Source of the DNA: Ginkgo biloba
Taxonomy: Eukaryota > Plantae > Ginkgophyta
Reading direction: 5' to 3'
DNA: 30,343 nt
NCBI GenBank assembly: GCA_024626585.2
Contig: JANKJI020000002.1
Location: 252,167,940-252,198,282, forward strand
Part shown: positions 3,262-30,343 of the stretch, in pieces
How positions within the stretch are numbered: the first letter of the stretch is position 1
How the letters are laid out: each line of letters begins with the position of its first letter
Translations under genes and position numbers: made by a program
The notes under the pieces: generated by a model
What the model was told of the DNA's origin: nothing
The model's input: the letters and a program-made list of their open reading frames with translations, nothing else
Databases searched by the model: none

Positions 3262-5822
3262 CTAAGTGGGGTGTTCAGAGGTCGGACGCGCTTCAGAAAC
3301 AGAAACTGCCAAAAACATGTGGGAAATGTTTCAGCATTTTCCGTTTTTTTCTGAAAACATTTTGTTGGAGTTTCAACCTCAGCTGAATAAAAATGCCTTT
3401 CAGTCATTTCCTGTGGGGGCACACATAGGGTCTACATGAATGACTCTAAACTTGGAAAAATATCCTAGGAAGGTTAAAGAACATGCAAAATAATATAAAA
3501 TAAAATCTTGGAAAGAAACAACTACTTTTCTTGTGCATTCCAATCTTCACCATGTCTCTTGTAAGGAGTACATGACTGGGCCTTCAATATTGGGATGTAC
3601 CTCCTGAAGATCTTGATCTCCACTCATCCACATTAGCCTTTGGTAGTCTGGATTTATTATCTACACCTTTGCTCATGGATCTACTTTAGTTCAGGATTAG
3701 TATTGGGTTCTAACTGCCATAGTTCAGATGATATTGGATATAAATGTACAACGATCTTGAGATTAATGATCTTGATAATTAATCAAGCTCAACCCCCAAT
3801 ACTTTTGTTATTCATTATGTATCCAGATTGTAGTTACCTTCAGCCTAACCTATAAAGGCTAATCCTAATATCAATAGCTGAATTTGATTTTTTGTTGCAT
3901 ATTTGATGTCTTCTGAATTTCCTACTTGATCGTGTTTATGAATGTAGGTATATACTATTATTTTGAAAACTAGGACTTTTCAAAAAGCCCATCCACCCAG
4001 TCTAAATATATACCAATCCAACCCAAAAATAAACAGCAATCCAAAAATTGCTGAAAACATGTGGGGAATGTTTCGGCATTTCCTATGTTTTCCTAAAAAC
4101 ATTTCCTTGTAAATTCACACAAATNNNNNNNNNNNNNNNNNNNNNNNNNNNNNNNNNNNNNNNNNNNNNNNNNNNNNNNNNNNNNNNNNNNNNNNNNNNN
4201 NNNNNNNNNNNNNNNNNNNNNNNNATATTTTTGCTAGCTAGATAAAATCCCGATAATCTCCAATGTTTTTTATTTGTAGGTTATTATCACTCCTAATGTT
4301 CACTTGTTTGATATTGATTTCTTTGTCAAAGTAGAGTCGGTCTCCCTTGATAGGTTCTTCTTCCAACTGTCGATCTTCTTGCATTTCTCTTAAGAAATTA
4401 TGTGGTATAGTTGGTCCTTCTTATGTGGGAGTCATTGGTGGATCTCCTTTTCTTAATATTATTCGTATAAAGTCCCCTCCTAGTTTCAAAATGAAACTTT
4501 TCCCTTCGTCCTCCGCATAGGTTATTTTTTTCCTTATCTGCAATAATGGATTGGACAGTGTGCATGCTATAGTCACAATGTGTGGCATTTTTCATCAGTC
4601 ACACTGTGCATTTCTTGTGTTGGCATATGTGGGGTTCACATGAATGATTCTAAACTTGAGCCTTCACAATAATGGGATATGCCTCTTGAAGATCTTGGCC
4701 TACACTCATCCACATTAACCTTTGGTAATCTGGATTGTTATCGACGCCCTTTGCTCATAGAGCCATTTCTAGTTCAGTATTGGCATTATAGTTTCAATGG
4801 TATTGGACATTAAATGTATGATGATATTGATATTTAATGAAGCTCAAGCCCCAAAACTTTTGTTATTCCTTATGTATTCAAATTGTAGTCATGTCAAGTG
4901 TAATCTATAAAGGCTAATCCTAATATCAATATACGATTTTAACTTTTTGTTTCATGTTTGATGTCCTTTGAATTCCCATTTGATAGCGTTCAACTTCATA
5001 CTTCGAATTTCATATTAATAACCGATGCGTGCATGCACACNNNNNNNNNNNNNNNNNNNNNNNNNNNNNNNNNNNNNNTGCTCATAGAGCCACTTCTAGT
5101 TCGGTACTGTAATCGGCATTGAGTTTTAACTACCATAGTTCCAATGATATTGGACATCAAATGTATGATGCTCTTGAGCTTAATGATCTTGATAATTAAT
5201 CAAGCTCAATCCCCAATATTTTTAGTATTCCTTATGTATACAAATTATTTATAAAGGCTAATCCTAGTGTCAATACACGATTTGAGTTTTTTGTTTCATA
5301 TTTGACATCTTCTAAATTTCTTATTTGATTGTGTTCAACTTCATGCAACTAATTTCACATTAATAATTGATGCATGCATGTCTATCAATATGTTTGTGTG
5401 TATTATTACATTTAAAAAAGACTTTTCCAAAATTCCATCCACCAAATTTAAGTTTATACCGATCCAACCCAAATGTGACCGCCAAGCCAACCTGAGTATA
5501 TTATTAATAGTAATAACAAAACAATACATCAGCCCAACACAAAATAAGCNNNNNNNNNNNNNNNNNNNNNNNNNNNNNNNNNAACTCAAAACTTAATTGT
5601 GGTTGACTCAATATTAATTCTTGTTGGATCAAAATAGCATTAAAGTGTTCCCAATGTTTTAACAATATAATATTTTATGGTAAATATTTGCCACAGGCAT
5701 ATGCTCGAGTGTGTGCGCGTGCACGTGTGTATAAAGTCCAATTGTGTTGATTCTTGTTTCCTAGTATTTTGAAAACACCCATTTTGAAAGCATTTGCCAT
5801 TTCCAAGTTTAAGGTGACTTAA
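3262..5822 (+). mobile_element. Non-autonomous hAT DNA transposon relic
   Basis: 8-bp direct repeat ATCAAAGC at 3254-3261 and 5823-5830; termini CTAAGT...ACTTAA. The internal + strand relic LVHSNL..KEYMTGPS..WDVPPED (about 3530-3615) resembles the C-terminus of DUF659-type hAT transposases. Confidence 0.75.
3428..5345 (+). repeat. Three degenerate direct copies of the hAT 3' segment (about 3428-3940, 4631-4995, 5079-5345)
   Basis: Shared blocks: acatgaatga.tctaaactt, tgctcat.ga, aagctcaa.cccc, taaaggctaatccta. Confidence 0.85.
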
Positions 5823-12847: not shown

Positions 12848-12924
12848 TTGGAATATAACTTGTGGAGCAATCAAACCAAGAAGGGCCAAAGCATAATACA
12901 GCTTGCCTGTTGTAAAAAGATAGC
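12848..12924 (-). CDS. CHLG: Chlorophyll synthase exon (G-YLFTTGKLYYALALLGLIAPQVIFQ)
   Basis: 77 nt between TTGCAG and GTAAGA; phase is compatible with the previous exon. Confidence 0.96.
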
Positions 12925-15398: not shown

Positions 15399-15480
15399 CT
15401 GCAACAGATAATTGAGTGATGTCAATCGCACCGACACAAATCCACTTTGCAGTGTCAATGCCAAATGCAACTGGTAGTGA
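15399..15480 (-). CDS. CHLG: Chlorophyll synthase exon (SLPVAFGIDTAKWICVGAIDITQLSVA-G)
   Basis: 82 nt between GGCAG and GTATGT; ends in phase 1. Confidence 0.97.
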
Positions 15481-15619: not shown

Positions 15620-15682
15620 CTGCAGTCCCATGGCTCGATCTCCTTCAATGCTTTTGAAGTCATTTACAATAGCAATACCTAG
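15620..15682 (-). CDS. CHLG: Chlorophyll synthase exon (LGIAIVNDFKSIEGDRAMGLQ)
   Basis: 63 nt between TGCAG and GTTTCT; carries the second aspartate-rich motif NDFKSxEGD. Confidence 0.97.
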
Positions 15683-23822: not shown

Positions 23823-24661
23823 CTAAGTTACTAGGATCCGGCCCTAGGGATCCCAGTTCTGTTCCCGATTCATTTTGGGAGTGGATATGACTTGGAAATG
23901 GGANNNNNNNNNNNNNNNNNNNNNNNNNNNNNNNNNNNNNNNNNNNNNNNNNNNNNNNNNNNNNNNNNNNNNNNNNNNNNNNNNNNNNNNNNNNNNNNNN
24001 NNNNNNNNNNNNNNNNNNNNNNNNNNNNNNNNNNNNNNNNNNNNNNNNNNNNNNNNNNNNNNNNNNNNNNNNNNNNNNNNNNNNNNNNNNNNNNNNNNNN
24101 NNNNNNNNNNNNNNNNNNNNNNNNNNNNNNNNNNNNNNNNNNNNNNNNNNNNNNNNNNNNNNNNNNNNNNNNNNNNNNNNNNNNNNNNNNNNNNNNNNNN
24201 NNNNNNNNNNNNNNNNNNNNNNNNNNNNNNNNNNNNNNNNNNNNNNNNNNNNNNNNNNNNNNNNNNNNNNNNNNNNNNNNNNNNNNNNNNNNNNNNNNNN
24301 NNNNNNNNNNNNNNNNNNNNNNNNNNNNNNNNNNNNNNNNNNNNNNNNNNNNNNNNNNNNNNNNNNNNNNNNNNNNNNNNNNNNNNNNNNNNNNNNNNNN
24401 NNNNNNNNNNNNNNNNNNNNNNNNNNNNNNNNNNNNNNNNNNNNNNNNNNNNNNNNNNNNNNNNNNNNNNNNNNNNNNNNNNNNNNNNNNNNNNNNNNNN
24501 NNNNNNNNNNNNNNNNNNNNNNNNNNNNNNNNNNNNNNNNNNNNNNNNNNNNNNNNNNNNNNNNNNNNNNNNNNNNNNNNNNNNNNNNNNNNNNNNNNNN
24601 NNNNNNNNNNNNNNNNNNNNNNNNNNNTTTTGTTTGCCGCTCCCGCTTCCTGGTAACTTAG
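23823..24661. mobile_element. hAT-type MITE/non-autonomous element spanning an N gap
   Basis: 14-bp TIRs CTAAGTTACTAGGA / TCCTGGTAACTTAG (1 mismatch), flanked by the perfect 8-bp TSD ACCAGAAC at 23815-23822 and 24662-24669. Confidence 0.92.
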
Positions 24662-25659
24662 ACCAGAACACATGGCCAGGAGGAAAGGAACTGGAATATG
24701 AATAGAATCCAATTGTACAGAGCTGACTGATAATAGGAGTCAAAATGTGATCTTGCAGCAGTGGATGAGTGATTAGTAATTTCTTGAAGCATATACTCCA
24801 ACTACACTTTCAGAATGATATTGGAAGCTTTGAGCATGAGATATGGATAATGCAAAGGTACAGATCTGCGATTTAGTAAATCCTGAGATACAGGACAGTT
24901 GGCATCATTACATTCTTAAGGGAACTAGTCCTACAAGAAACCGCTGCCCCATTGGTTTTTTACAGGACTAATCCTTCTGGGATTGCTACCAGATCAGGCA
25001 CTAGGTGGTGATGGACTGAAGGAAGAACAGCAATGCCGTAGCTCTTTGATTGGTGCTGATTGAAAATTCAGTATTATTGAGGATGAAAGATTACATTCGC
25101 ATTTTAATATTTTATTCATACCAACCATGCGCAGCAAGTTTTTTGTTATCACTATCCTTTCATTTCTAACTTTATCTTGTTTCTGTCATTTCTAGCACTT
25201 TGCTTCTTGCCCTGTCCATAATGTAGAGTGAACCCCAAATTTTGAAGAAAGGGGGACAAAAGAGGCATTCAAAGAGAAGGTTTCAGCTTGGTAATGTAAG
25301 AACCCAACCACTTTTAGAGATAGAATTGCAGGAAAAAAGTTAAAACGGACTGAAAATCTTAAAGAAGGGGAATTGCAAAGAATATTTTATGGATACTCTT
25401 CTAACGATGCCATCCTTGATGTGTCTTTTTTACTTGGATCTTGGCATTTTAGTTTCCCAACCATCCAATCTATTTCTAGTTATATTCAAAATTTGAACCA
25501 ATTCTTGAAACTAACATAATTTTTGCATTCTTTGTATTTTTCATATTTTTGGGAACTCTAGGTTTTCAAATCTCCTTCATAATGAACTCCAAGTCAACAC
25601 AACTAGGTGTTTGTAAAGTGAATTCTTAAGTTACTTCAAAATTTTCAAACCCCGATATC

Positions 25660-26060
25660 CTGAAGTCTTTGAGCTTCCACCTTTTATTTTATGAAGTCCT
25701 TAATTTATGAAACTCAAATGATTTTTAAACCACATTGAAGAAAATGTTAGGTCCATTGAATTGAATGTTTGGCAAGGTGTTGGGTGTGCTTACTTTATTT
25801 TCCATGATCTTTGATCTCCTAAGGTCTCCGTGAGTTTCACCTTTTATTTTGTGAAATTTTAGCTTACAAAACTCAAATGTTTTTTAGAGAACTTTGAATA
25901 AATCATCAGGTCCATTAAATGGATGTTTAGAAAATGTTTGAGGAACATTCACTTTAGAATCCCCACTCCCTAAAGTCTTTATCTTGTGAATTATCCAACT
26001 TTATGAAACCCAAAATATTCCAAAATCATATCGAATAACATATCGGGTTCACAATGTTTA
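25660..26060 (+). repeat. Degenerate tandem repeat of about 160 bp (2 full units and 1 partial), retroelement UTR-like
   Basis: cacctttta ttttNtgaa..aaactcaaatg..aggtccatt..atgttt recurs at about 25678 and 25838, and partially at about 25985. Confidence 0.75.
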
Positions 26061-26230
26061 TATGAGGTGCCTTCACTTTGGTGAGTGAGGGGTCCGATAG
26101 CCCGATTCCTTTAGTCATGGGGGGAGGGGCNNNNNNNNNNNNNNNNNNNNNNNNNNNNNNNNNNNNNNNNNNNNNNNNNNNNNNNNNNNNNNNNNNNNNN
26201 NNNNNNNNNNNNNNNNNNNNNNNNNNNNNN

Positions 26231-27496
26231 GAGATAGAAAATACATCAATAGTATGTGTGGATGAATTATTATAAAAAAATCACCAAAATAGAGAAGGTA
26301 AGAGACAGAGAAAGGATTCCCTTAAAATTCCATTAGATGAGTTGGAGCTCTTAACTTGTGAACATATGGTAGAAAGAGAGCAATCGACTCATGACCAAGT
26401 TTATGGATGCTACAACCAGTCAAAGATGGAAAGTAGAGATTATGATGCTCTCGAAGACCTTAGCAAAAGTACTATTCAAGATCTTGAGCACCATGATAAT
26501 CTCATAAAAAAGGGCAAGAAGTTATCAAATCCAACTCTAGAGGGACTAATGAAAGGATGGAAAATTAAAGTTAAGAATGTTATCCCACTTAGTGGGTTAG
26601 TTCCACACAAATAACCTTATGTAATAGTAACTTCAAAGAAGTTTCGGGATACATAATGTTATTTCTGCATCAGGAAGCTTTCAATTAATTCTTTTCCTTA
26701 TGTATTTTGTACCATACCTCTATATTATTCTAAAAATTATAAAGAGTGTGCTGGAGGAAATCCATCTAGGACTAAAGATGCTATAACTAAATCATTATTT
26801 GAGAAACTCACAATGGGTTCCTATCATAAGTTTGAAAACCTACACTCCTCTAAAAAGGATACATGAATAAATTTGCAAATAGATCATGAGGTCAGGGAAT
26901 GGCATGAACATAAGCATGAATGTGAAAATAATGTTATAGTTAGTGAGACTAGTTTTCCTTCAAAAGGAGAAAATATTGGTTCAAGAGGAACAATAACTAA
27001 AGAAGCTATGTTGCAAGAAGCTATAAGGAGGAGTTTCAAAGACCTTGGTGTTTAGAGACTTAGAGGAAGCCCTTCTCGACTGGTCACCAAAGAAATTCTT
27101 CAAAGTTTCCCCTTTCCCTCTTAGAATGACCCAAGCAAGGATTATATCGGTCTGTTGCAAATAACGGCGGGTTCCATGGATATTGATGCTCCAACAAAAC
27201 ATTTCCAAATCAAGGCTAGGAATCCCGTGGGACTTTGGAAATATGAAGAAAGCCTCGATGCACAATGTGGCATTTGCAAAAACCACTCGATGAATCTATA
27301 CACTAATTGCCACACTGAGAAACGAAATCAAAGCGACACAGATGTGTGTCAATTGGCATTCGCCGAAGTAACATGCAGCCATATCTATCATAAACATTGT
27401 ATAAACCAATTTTGGCAAAACCACTATGGTCATAGACCATGTTCTATTCCTAATGCTTTAGGACATGTTATTAATAATTATAATAGGGTTTCCTAA
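26231..27496 (+). pseudogene. Decayed ORF of at least 421 codons: unknown N-terminal part + UIM-like motif + RBX1-like RING-H2
   Basis: The predicted ORFs ending at 26275, 26342-26614, 26873-27055 and 27155-27496 are all in one frame with no frameshift. There are only six internal stops (26273, 26612, 26654, 26864, 27053, 27122). Confidence 0.75.
27176..27496 (+). pseudogene. Intronless divergent RBX1/ROC1-like RING-H2 domain (106 aa from MDIDAP)
   Basis: HFQIKARNPVGLWKY aligns with RBX1 RFEVKKWNAVALWAW; CGICKNHSMNL with CAICRNHIMDL; C..AF...CSHIYHKHCI with C.VAWG.CNHAFHFHCI. Confidence 0.85.
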
Positions 27497-27756
27497 TGAA
27501 GAGATTGAAAGGAGGGGGCGTACAGTCGAAAAAGAACCGAAATGTTCTTTGTTTGGTGACAAGATTTAGAGGGCAATCCATTGCTATTCGAGCAGTTTTG
27601 AGGAATGGAGAAGGTTGTGGATCAATAGGAGCCAACCTTCGAATCCTCCGTTTTGGGTTGTGTCTTCCACCTCGAGGCGGGTCACGATGATTCACACAAA
27701 CGCATCGGTTCAACCACAATAGGCACCACAGCAGCGCTACAAAGGCTAGGCTATGC

Positions 27757-27930
27757 GACATAAGGGAAAATTATTATTAAAATTTGTTTAAAGGAGTTGG
27801 AAAAAGATTTTTAGAATATTCTTGGGTTAAAGAATATTCTAAATTAGACATAAGACACTTTCCTTTTTAATATGAATTATTCCAAAGCACTATGCATACT
27901 CATTATTAAAGGGAGGTATCACATGGTACT
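27757..27930 (+). mobile_element. Chromodomain-like relic followed by purine tract (AAAGGGAGG) and putative LTR start
   Basis: IRENYY*NLFKGVGKRFLEYSWVKE resembles the chromovirus Y.EYLVKW.G....DATW..E pattern. TATCACATGGTACT (27917-27930) matches the LTR-start candidate at 7007-6994 (minus) at 13/14 positions. Confidence 0.5.
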
Positions 27931-28306
27931 TTAGCATCAACGCTTATAAGTTCAAATCATGTGGAGTTAAAGGATCTCAAGAAACAACACAAAATAAGCC
28001 TCAATGCAATGGATGGATGTACATCACATCGAGAACATGGGCCATAGAAGGCCACTCACATACATTCCAATTAGTCACGAAAAGGATACGGGGAGATATG
28101 GTGAAAATGTTGTTATGAGAAGAAGGAAGTGAGAAGTCATCAAGGATTAGATAATAAGTGGATAAATAAATGGTGAGAGGACATAAAGTATGAAATTTAT
28201 TGTATCTGGTAAGAAAATAAACCTAGAATGGAATCTTAGACATAGAGTGAGTGAGTTAGAGAGGTAAAGATAACACTATAAGGAGAAGTGATTGGCAAAG
28301 GAAATA

Positions 28307-28704
28307 ATGCAAAAAGAAGCACAACTAGAGGAGAAAGGAATGCTGATGATATAGTTAGAGGTGGAGGATAAGATGTAGCTAGTGGAGAAAGAAACATAAA
28401 AAACATAGAGACGGGATCCCTAAGAAGATAGGTTGTAGAATTAGAAAATGAGCAGAAGAGAAAAAGAGTTAGTAATGAATCAAAATCAAAATCAGAGAAA
28501 GAAGAGGTTAAGTGAAAAGTTCCATAAAGGCCAAAGTATTATGATTCATTAACATTATAATTATTGAAGAACCAAAGAGGTGAATCCAAAATGAAGGTTA
28601 TGATCTTTGGAGAAAGATTGGGACCAAACTATTTATTATATAGGGTAGGAGCCTTGGAGAAATATTTTGATTGGGAAGAGATGGACGACCCTAAGAGAGT
28701 TAAT
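28307..28704 (+). mobile_element. Ty3/gypsy gag N-terminal relic, truncated by an N gap
   Basis: KMKVMIFGERLGPNYLLYRVGALEKYFDWEEMDDPKRV resembles the gypsy gag pattern F.G.L.P.ELLDW...EKYFD.....D.KRVK; it is preceded by a decayed charged/coiled-coil region. Confidence 0.8.
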
Positions 28705-29175
28705 NNNNNNNNNNNNNNNNNNNNNNNNNNNNNNNNNNNNNNNNNNNNNNNNNNNNNNNNNNNNNNNNNNNNNNNNNNNNNNNNNNNNNNNNNNNNNNNN
28801 NNNNAAGAAGCCAAAATAAGGGCAATATAAAGAAAACAATGAAGAAAAGAACAAAATCTGTAGCTCTTCAACATTTTACTTTCAAAAATATTTGCACTAC
28901 TATAATAGAATGAAATGAAAAGATAAAGAAAGAGAAAAGATACACAATCCATATGTTGCATATCTATTTTCATAACCATTCGTGTAAACTCATTTCCTGA
29001 ACTACCATTAGCAGTAAGCTTACTTCCGACTCCAGAATGGATGTCAAGCAGGTCACAACAGAGAGTAAGGGGTTGCAGTAAAACTATTACAATGGATGAG
29101 AAAAAAGAGTGAGATCCCAGAAAAAATAAGGGTTGATGTCAAAGAAAAAAGTATAGTTATCAATCGAAAAAGCAC

Positions 29176-29263
29176 CAGAGGCAGCAGCACCACAGACTAC
29201 CCCCCAGATCAGTGGTGGCCAAGTAACTGGCTTTGTAAGTTGTAGGCGAATCTTCCATTTATC
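29176..29263 (-). CDS. CHLG: Chlorophyll synthase exon (DKWKIRLQLTKPVTWPPLIWGVVCGAAAS-G)
   Basis: The peptide matches the hallmark ChlG N-terminal motif. Acceptor TTTGCAG, donor GTGCTT; 88 nt, ends in phase 1. Confidence 0.97.
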
Positions 29264-29639
29264 CTGCAAAATAAAATACAAAAATTAAAAATTAAATTTC
29301 CTCCCACAGATTACATTCCTCCCAGATGGACACTGATCCTTATGTTCCTTTATCTATATTCTATGTGGCAATGCATAACCAAACACATTTCATAACCCAC
29401 TTACTATTGTATTCTATCATTTTCATATTACTCTGCTCTCCAAAACTAAAGCAAACACAATGCACATTCTCTCACAGATTTCACACAACCTCCCCACAAA
29501 CAATCAATCTCACAACATTTTTACATCAACCTCTTTAAATATCTGTTAACGTACATACGCTTATCACTTAGAAATTGGCCTTATTTCAGCTAGATGCCTT
29601 CCACATTTACCCATATTCAAGTCCAGATTTGATCAAAGC

Positions 29640-30343
29640 TAGACAGGCAAAATTCCAAGTCTTCTGTCTTCCATAGTTGACATGACACTCATACTTGATG
29701 ATATGATGTCATGGATTCATGAGTGAATGCATAACTTCAATAACTAGATTACAATGTTGATAATAAATGTGTAGGATTTAATGAACACACCCCTAAGACA
29801 ATTTCCAAAGGCCTCTGACACCATTGTCTTATACAAGAATTGCACTCGTTGGGTTATATACCAATCATTATCAGAGTAGTGATGACTTTATATGAGTTGG
29901 CGGTGGGCAGAGTTTGCAGAACATACAGCTTCTCTACAGAAATTCATTAAGAGTCCAGGAGGGGTGCCCTCACTATCCAACCCTATTTGGACATTATTTT
30001 AATGTCCCAATGGAGTTTACTCAAGGGAATATTTGTGCACATGATGAATGCATTCTATATGAACTGTCACTCGCAATCCTCCTTTTGTTGATGATTTTGT
30101 TCTTCTATCTTTTGTGCTAGAGGGGTTCCATAGGCAATTAGATGCTCTTGCCTCTTTTTGTGATAGCAAGTGCCTTGAGGTGAACTTGGGCAAAACCAAG
30201 GTTATGGTTTTCAACATATGCAAAAACCACTTCATGGCGTCACTTGACCTTCAGAGGTTGGGCAATTGATCTGGTATCCTTTTACATGTCTTGGTGTTTA
30301 GTTTTGTAGTTCTACATAAGCATGACTACATACATTATGCAAA
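29640..30343 (+). mobile_element. LINE reverse transcriptase relic
   Basis: VQEGCPHYPTLFG (cf. GVKQGCPLSPTLFG), AILL..DDFVLL (cf. FADD) and RQLDALASFCDSKCLEVNLGKTKVMVFN, with frameshifts. Confidence 0.9.

Follow-up and report, generated by a model that had tools for sequence, protein, structure and literature searches.

The stretch described here, positions 26231–28704, lies in a window of 30,343 nucleotides (the whole stretch of DNA that was analysed, to which all positions refer) and is a single contig of 2,474 bases bounded on both sides by scaffold gaps of 100 N (26131–26230 and 28705–28804). It holds a long, decayed coding frame ending in a domain that resembles RBX1, the RING-H2 subunit of cullin-RING ligases, and, further downstream, a putative fragment of a gypsy-type gag gene. 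Read from 26231, the frame runs through 422 codons without a frameshift until it is closed by TAA at 27494–27496, with exactly six internal stops: TAA at 26273, 26612 and 26654, TGA at 26864, and TAG at 27053 and 27122. The five other frames contain 21–50 stops each over 26231–27496, and 2,000 composition-preserving shuffles gave a mean of 32 stops and a minimum of 14 for the frame of 26231. The stretch thus does contain a long coding frame, decayed but free of frameshifts, and the first-pass annotation of this DNA, which had described one frame of about 420 codons with far fewer stops than random sequence would give, was right on both points. To the left of the upstream gap (24628–26130), no coding-like frame was found on either strand.

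The six stops had also been presented as evidence of decay because each is one C-to-T step from CAA, CGA or CAG; this is true of any stop codon and hence has no evidential value. Comparison with two Ginkgo biloba gene models that are related to the frame, Gb_05343 (P0001) and Gb_05309 (P0002), showed that the stops at 27053 and 27122 fit deamination, with glutamine at both positions in P0001 and at the first in P0002. The stop at 26273 does not fit, as the second base of the codon differs in most copies. The parts of the frame and its continuation are as follows.

26231–26562, plus strand: segment A of the frame, more repeated than any other part of the module, with one stop (26273).
26563–26894, plus strand: segment B of the frame, of lower copy number and with the weakest coding signal; stops at 26612, 26654 and 26864.
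26926–27102, plus strand: exon-sized segment of 177 nt with a UIM-like motif (27011–27034); loose contig ends at 26926 and 27102.
27053–27124, plus strand: linker from the UIM-like segment to RBX1, bounded by the TAG at 27053 and the TAG at 27122; the junction is open in both gene models.
27176–27496, plus strand: RBX1-like coding sequence, ATG to TAA, 106 codons, free of stops and frameshifts.
27497–27740, plus strand: tail of the family unit, homologous to the tail of P0001 and possibly a former RBX1 3′ untranslated region.

Stop depletion held separately in each of four sub-segments: 1 stop in 110 codons (segment A), 3 in 111 (segment B), 2 in 93 and 0 in 106, with P = 0.0003, 0.019, 0.030 and 0.0003, respectively.

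The domain at the end of the frame is a complete, full-length RBX1-like domain, as had been stated. Translated 27125–27493 scored 32.6 bits against the Pfam family zf-rbx1 (PF12678; E = 9.9e-8), only just above the cut-off of 31, and 20.5 bits against zf-ANAPC11, under its cut-off of 25. All 20 matches among solved structures in the PDB at E ≤ 0.01 were RBX1 (E = 2e-11 to 9e-8; human RBX1, E = 3e-11), with structure alignments spanning human residues 13–89, and no RBX2 or APC11 chain fell under E 0.01 among them. On these scores, the RING of the module appears closer to RBX1 than to RBX2/RNF7 or APC11. Homology to RBX1 opens at the ATG at 27176, which aligns with the RBX1 N-terminus, and the stop lies three codons past the RBX1 end; the two are colinear from the start codon through the N-terminal strand to the last cysteine, and the whole RBX1-type coding sequence is one uninterrupted, intron-free block.

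Canonical RBX1 is nearly invariant among eukaryotes, whereas identity of the window copy to canonical RBX1 proteins is only 30–38%. Ten of its twelve zinc ligands are kept, with Tyr at the position of human C53 and Pro at that of D97; for the N-terminal beta-strand, by which RBX1 inserts into the cullin C-terminal domain, the alignment shows invariant F, K, V, L and W columns, while two tryptophans of the strand are replaced (human W27 by Arg and W35 by Tyr). In simulations in which a canonical RBX1 coding sequence decayed neutrally until identity was 40% or lower, 0.4–3% of runs remained stop-free and fewer than 0.03% kept at least 11 of 13 Cys/His residues. Because neutral decay so rarely keeps frame and ligands at such divergence, the RBX1-like domain is not a recently dead copy of host RBX1; the pattern of retained residues indicates that it was once, and for a long time before its death, under constraint on its zinc ligands. 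It differs further from host RBX1, which is small and standalone, in lying in frame behind about 300 upstream codons, in being intron-free, and in belonging to a multicopy module that is broken in every copy seen.

When 1.84 billion representative proteins were scanned in full with HMMER, only two close relatives of the RING came up, at 76% and 66% identity, the remainder being canonical RBX1 at 30–38%; no intact family member was present among these proteins. The two relatives are the gene models Gb_05343 and Gb_05309, each of which scores only about 12 bits against zf-rbx1. By tblastn, residues 165–343 of Gb_05343 are colinear with 26831–27409 in the same frame as the module, and from 26831 the UIM-like part, the linker (40 codons) and the RBX1 start form one stop-free frame in both models. 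The junction with the upstream sequence is therefore open in two homologous copies. Past the junction both models move to the next frame: residues 345–394 of P0001 correspond to 27414–27563, and the correspondence can be followed by eye to about 27740. Within the RING, the two models have the same frameshift and have lost the same two cysteines, both of which the window copy keeps. These shared lesions indicate a common ancestor that was broken before it was copied, and therefore a spread of the family that was independent of a working RING.

Two other models, Gb_12889 (P0112) and Gb_22420 (P0113), contain the upstream block of Gb_05343 followed by a cellulose-synthase fragment instead of RBX1 (PF03552, E = 1e-29; an N-terminal fragment, profile positions 1–156). 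All four models look like mosaic repeat debris mis-annotated as genes, and we found no literature naming any of them. Exact-sequence look-ups with P0001 and P0002 yielded no record that gives the DNA around them. Searching the whole window by tblastn with the four models gave no further family pieces outside 26831–27563. The upstream pieces of the window gave one weak match of 29 residues to Gb_12889 (E = 0.03) and no other, which we do not use as support. In the ESM Atlas, the N-terminal 420 residues of Gb_12889 reached chance-level scores only (about 0.8) and the upstream piece of the window had no usable match; a word-indexed protein search with the RING piece and a 112-residue upstream piece found no match, the longer models being outside the length window searched.

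Copies of the module were also sought in a DNA run that probably derives from another sample, its contigs being placed on the stretch at ≥80% likeness. This placed 1,663 contigs on the stretch, mostly less than 90% alike. Distinct contigs per position numbered up to 51 in 26231–26562, 7–15 at the listed positions of 26563–26894, ten in the RING (at 27273), and three at 27520–27568. Given the ten contigs at 27273 and the two Ginkgo models, the RBX1-like segment is multicopy, as the first reading had supposed, and not single-copy. Diverged contigs bridge 26487–26841, 26690–27081 and 26968–27490, and tile 26487–27490 over all segment borders; the order of the segments therefore recurs in other copies.

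PolyA evidence of expression reached segment A alone. In a polyA RNA run, of which about 6% was read, reads were confined to 26231–26562, at about 85% likeness, with many differences from the window and with flanks that are absent from it; these reads come from an expressed relative elsewhere in the genome. They lie about 80–110 deep per orientation over 26294–26558, and this abundant transcript is a likely donor or relative of segment A. In the part of the run that was read, no polyA read matched the RING at 80% likeness. The piece 26926–27102 also occurs in an RNA-like run, where it stands midway along a contig of 4,027 nt between flanks that differ from those in the window. A 50-nt piece, 27509–27559, recurs in two RNA-like runs within an abundant contig (depth 66 and 49) that has other flanks on either side; either a further small capture or conservation by chance may account for it. 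Two near-identical contigs of low depth, from a run that is possibly RNA, cover 27221–27709 and may represent pre-mRNA of the chlorophyll synthase gene described below or DNA carry-over. In a run labelled as a different organism, a 233-nt contig is identical to window 27269–27501, the same species being present there or the run mislabelled.

The upstream parts of the frame are less readily named. The segment next to RBX1 had been called a ubiquitin-interacting motif, which we could not sustain: it has no Pfam match to UIM (PF02809) even at E 10, and the motif spacing is not conserved in the models. L-x-x-A-x-x-x-S spacing at 27011–27034 is present in the window copy only, P0001 being one residue short and P0002 lacking the serine. 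Segment B has no Pfam match. Within it we noticed by eye a 78-nt GT-AG stretch, 26596–26673, which starts with GTTAGT, ends in a T-rich tract and CAG, and holds the stops at 26612 and 26654; its length is a multiple of three, and it may represent a small intron retained from the ancestral unit.

Downstream of the module, the contig contains three further features.

27808–27890, no strand assigned: short separate repeat with a perfect 14-nt palindrome (27810–27823 and 27830–27843).
27891–28056, no strand assigned: spacer separating the RBX1 module from the gag-like repeat, with summed depth of 17.7 and 2.35 at 80% likeness.
28223–28704, plus strand: purine-rich, decayed gag-like N-terminal region in another frame than the module, with a high-copy gag-start motif (28638–28704) at the contig end.

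The summed depth of the palindromic repeat is 523, about 30 times single copy, against 18–50 on either side, and the arms of its palindrome enclose a 6-nt loop; this segment may be a miniature element.

The first-pass annotation had placed a chromodomain relic, a purine tract, the start of a long terminal repeat (LTR) and a gypsy gag in this region. No Pfam chromodomain was found in any plus-strand frame piece of 27465–27760, where the sole Pfam match was a chance-level one to UEV (E = 0.09). Judged by its homology to the tails of the paralogous models, 27497–27740 instead appears to belong to the family unit. The claimed LTR start was not borne out either: no direct repeat of at least 40 nt involving the stretch occurs in the 30-kb window, and the contig is bounded by scaffold gaps. 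No primer-binding site of the tRNA-Met type precedes gag, the sole match in the window (29812–29823, minus strand, two mismatches) being at chance level; target-site duplications, terminal inverted repeats and tandem repeats on the contig were represented by chance-sized matches only.

For the same-strand gypsy gag itself the picture is mixed. The 47 residues before the gap have no Pfam match, whereas the motif and the depth of the last 67 bases make a gag start plausible: 28638–28704 has a summed depth of 43,948, compared with about 15–20 for single-copy contigs, and the loose-end consensus continues like gypsy gag. The decayed gag-like frame has 17 stops in 315 codons, as against 27 and 30 in the other frames, and the purine-rich 28223–28637 upstream of the motif reads as a decayed gag N-terminus, in a frame other than that of the module. 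Between module and gag-like repeat, at 27891–28056, depth amounts to at most one copy at 80% likeness, a cut-off near which the RING copies themselves lie, so that more diverged flanks could escape detection. The depth of the gag start is about 100 times that of the RING (about ten contigs). Most likely, the gypsy gag fragment, which follows the module after 500–700 nt, is unrelated to it.

The stretch as a whole is set within another gene. The minus strand carries exons of chlorophyll synthase (ChlG) at 29087–29281, about 15650–15664, 15460–15477, 12881–12898 and 1374–1388, identified by matches to TIGR02056 (E = 3.8e-16 and 7.4e-6) and by conserved motifs, with the N-terminal exon at about 29160–29260. 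The introns are very long, gap-ridden and full of repeats, such that the gene spans almost the whole window; exons for profile positions of about 47–237 were incompletely found and may lie in gaps. Because ChlG exons flank it on the minus strand, the stretch lies antisense inside a long ChlG intron. Elsewhere in the window, 29914–30266 (plus strand) resembles by eye the central motifs of a LINE-type reverse transcriptase, although its two open reading frames have no Pfam match at E ≤ 0.1. Several direct-repeat families at 3585–5490, all spaced by about 1,055 nt and with 69–88% identity, indicate a diverged tandem or segmental duplication with a unit of about 1 kb.

We consider the best account of these data, with a probability of roughly two in three, to be that the stretch is a dead member of a mosaic family with some ten copies, which arose by RNA-mediated uptake of RBX1 beside fragments of other genes and was then passively copied, and that it lies beside an unrelated gypsy fragment. 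The family is probably one of Ginkgo biloba. That the window copy is dead had been said from the start and stands; the copy is without present function. Because the RBX1 coding sequence is complete and intron-free, its uptake would have been RNA-mediated, through either retroposition or template switching. The RBX1 part would have been placed in frame behind other gene fragments, namely the exon-sized UIM-like segment and, further upstream, the segment that has an expressed relative. The present copies would have been preceded by a long evolution under zinc-ligand constraint, in a working host paralogue or in a chimeric gene. Later, the unit would have been copied passively, by a mobile element whose ends lie off the contig or by segmental duplication, and in at least one lineage copying went on when the RING was already destroyed.

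Pieces of several genes in one multicopy unit, and one block joined to different genes, are the pattern of transposon-mediated capture and exon shuffling. Such capture of gene fragments is widespread among plant transposable elements, some of which hold multiple fragments and some of which capture through RNA (PMC13477047; reviewed in PMC13317346), and with shuffling it is reported to amount to about 400,000 fragments per gymnosperm genome (PMC13477047). Like plant mosaics formed by transposon capture or retroposition (Pack-type elements, LTR transduction or template switching, chimeric retrogenes), the Ginkgo unit joins coding pieces of at least two or three host donors; it is multicopy, decaying and mis-annotated as genes, has one upstream block with either RBX1 or cellulose synthase, and contains an RBX1 that is apparently RNA-derived. 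It differs from them in having no identified transposon ends, so that membership of any transposon class is putative, and in that the captured RBX1 is a whole coding sequence with an apparently long past constraint, which most captured fragments lack. The first-pass annotation knew of no earlier description of the architecture: the in-frame RBX1 fusion is real, whereas mosaics of gene fragments are common in gymnosperms, which makes it less unusual. We found no literature combining RING-box proteins with gene capture by transposons.

Several points weigh against this account. The 2.47-kb contig yielded no transposon ends, target-site duplication or poly-A remnant, and the left end of the family unit runs into the scaffold gap at 26230. 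Uptake through RNA presupposes that host RBX1 in Ginkgo has introns, as plant RBX1 genes generally do. The copy number is read from summed contig depth, which is not true copy number. Where human RBX1 has C53, each of the three family copies (window, P0001 and P0002) has Tyr or Asp; one zinc ligand was therefore missing already from the family ancestor, which makes a fully working RING less likely. Protein identity between window and models is 58–62% and nucleotide identity of the bridging contigs is about 80–83%; the former is about what would be expected of neutral change between copies at the latter. Finally, the Ginkgo gene models may be spliced predictions, and differences upstream of 26831 may be artefacts.

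Three other explanations were weighed. According to the first-pass annotation, a Ty3/gypsy LTR-retrotransposon family carries a UIM–RBX1 accessory gene whose product may engage host cullin-RING ligases, for example against silencing factors, and the stretch is a dead copy just upstream of the 3′ end or LTR of the element. A multicopy module whose in-frame fusion is open in two relatives agrees with this, as do the apparent past constraint on the RING, an intron-free RBX1 part that fits uptake through RNA, and a gypsy-like gag start on the same strand within about 1.1 kb. Yet neither chromodomain, LTR pair, primer-binding site, target-site duplication nor terminal repeats were found, so that carriage by an LTR retrotransposon is not supported, and a single element would not have accessory reading frame, chromodomain, purine tract, LTR and gag in that order. 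That the module belongs to the same element as gag is not supported, given the single-copy depth seen between them at 80% likeness and a gag copy number some two orders of magnitude above that of the RING. The RING-destroying lesions common to Gb_05343 and Gb_05309 mean that the RING was dispensable for spread, and the polyA reads included none from the RING; we regard this explanation as unlikely.

It is doubtful, too, that the stretch is what remains of a lineage-specific, multi-exon host gene with a C-terminal RBX1-like RING, multiplied by tandem or segmental duplication and pseudogenised without any transposon. The serial numbers of Gb_05309 and Gb_05343 are close and may mean physical closeness, past constraint on the RING would be natural in a host gene, and the possible GT-AG intron in segment B would remove two of the six stops. 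Against a gene duplicated as a whole, contig counts differ strongly among the parts of the unit (51, 7–15, 10 and 3), two other models continue from this upstream block into a cellulose-synthase fragment, and the exon-sized pieces 26926–27102 and 27509–27559 are common to unrelated transcripts. The window copy, moreover, lies antisense in an intron of an unrelated gene, and the protein scan brought up no intact member. Very improbable, in our judgement, is a chance juxtaposition in which an ordinary RBX1 processed pseudogene fell beside unrelated decayed coding debris and shares its frame by a one-in-three accident. RBX1 homology does run exactly from its own start codon to its stop, like that of a plain retrocopy, and the LINE-like sequence at 29914–30266 lies in the window; but two other copies have this junction in this frame, open and with a stop-free linker, and 30–38% identity with the ligands kept is not what a neutrally decayed canonical RBX1 looks like.

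What the stretch offers, on the account of a passively copied mosaic family, is a documented example of how gymnosperm genomes shuffle and multiply pieces of genes, which end up annotated as genes. Above the ordinary is its RBX1-like domain, at about a third identity with nearly all zinc ligands kept; this combination implies that some RBX1-derived protein, whether of the host or of a selfish element, worked for a long time in the Ginkgo lineage. A bolder idea, which we think improbable, is that a mobile element of this lineage, of LTR or other type, once encoded a chimeric protein with a diverged, zinc-binding RBX1-like RING that docked on host cullins and redirected ubiquitination, the present copies being its fossils. 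The parapoxvirus PACR protein is a viral RING-H2 mimic of APC11/RBX1, and the analogy, drawn in the first-pass annotation, would be that of a selfish element carrying a cullin-partner RING; here the resemblance is only an idea. If an intact member of the family exists, it would be a new cullin-partner variant, and if the fusion truly sat inside a transposon it would be, to our knowledge, the first known plant mobile element to carry a cullin-RING subunit.

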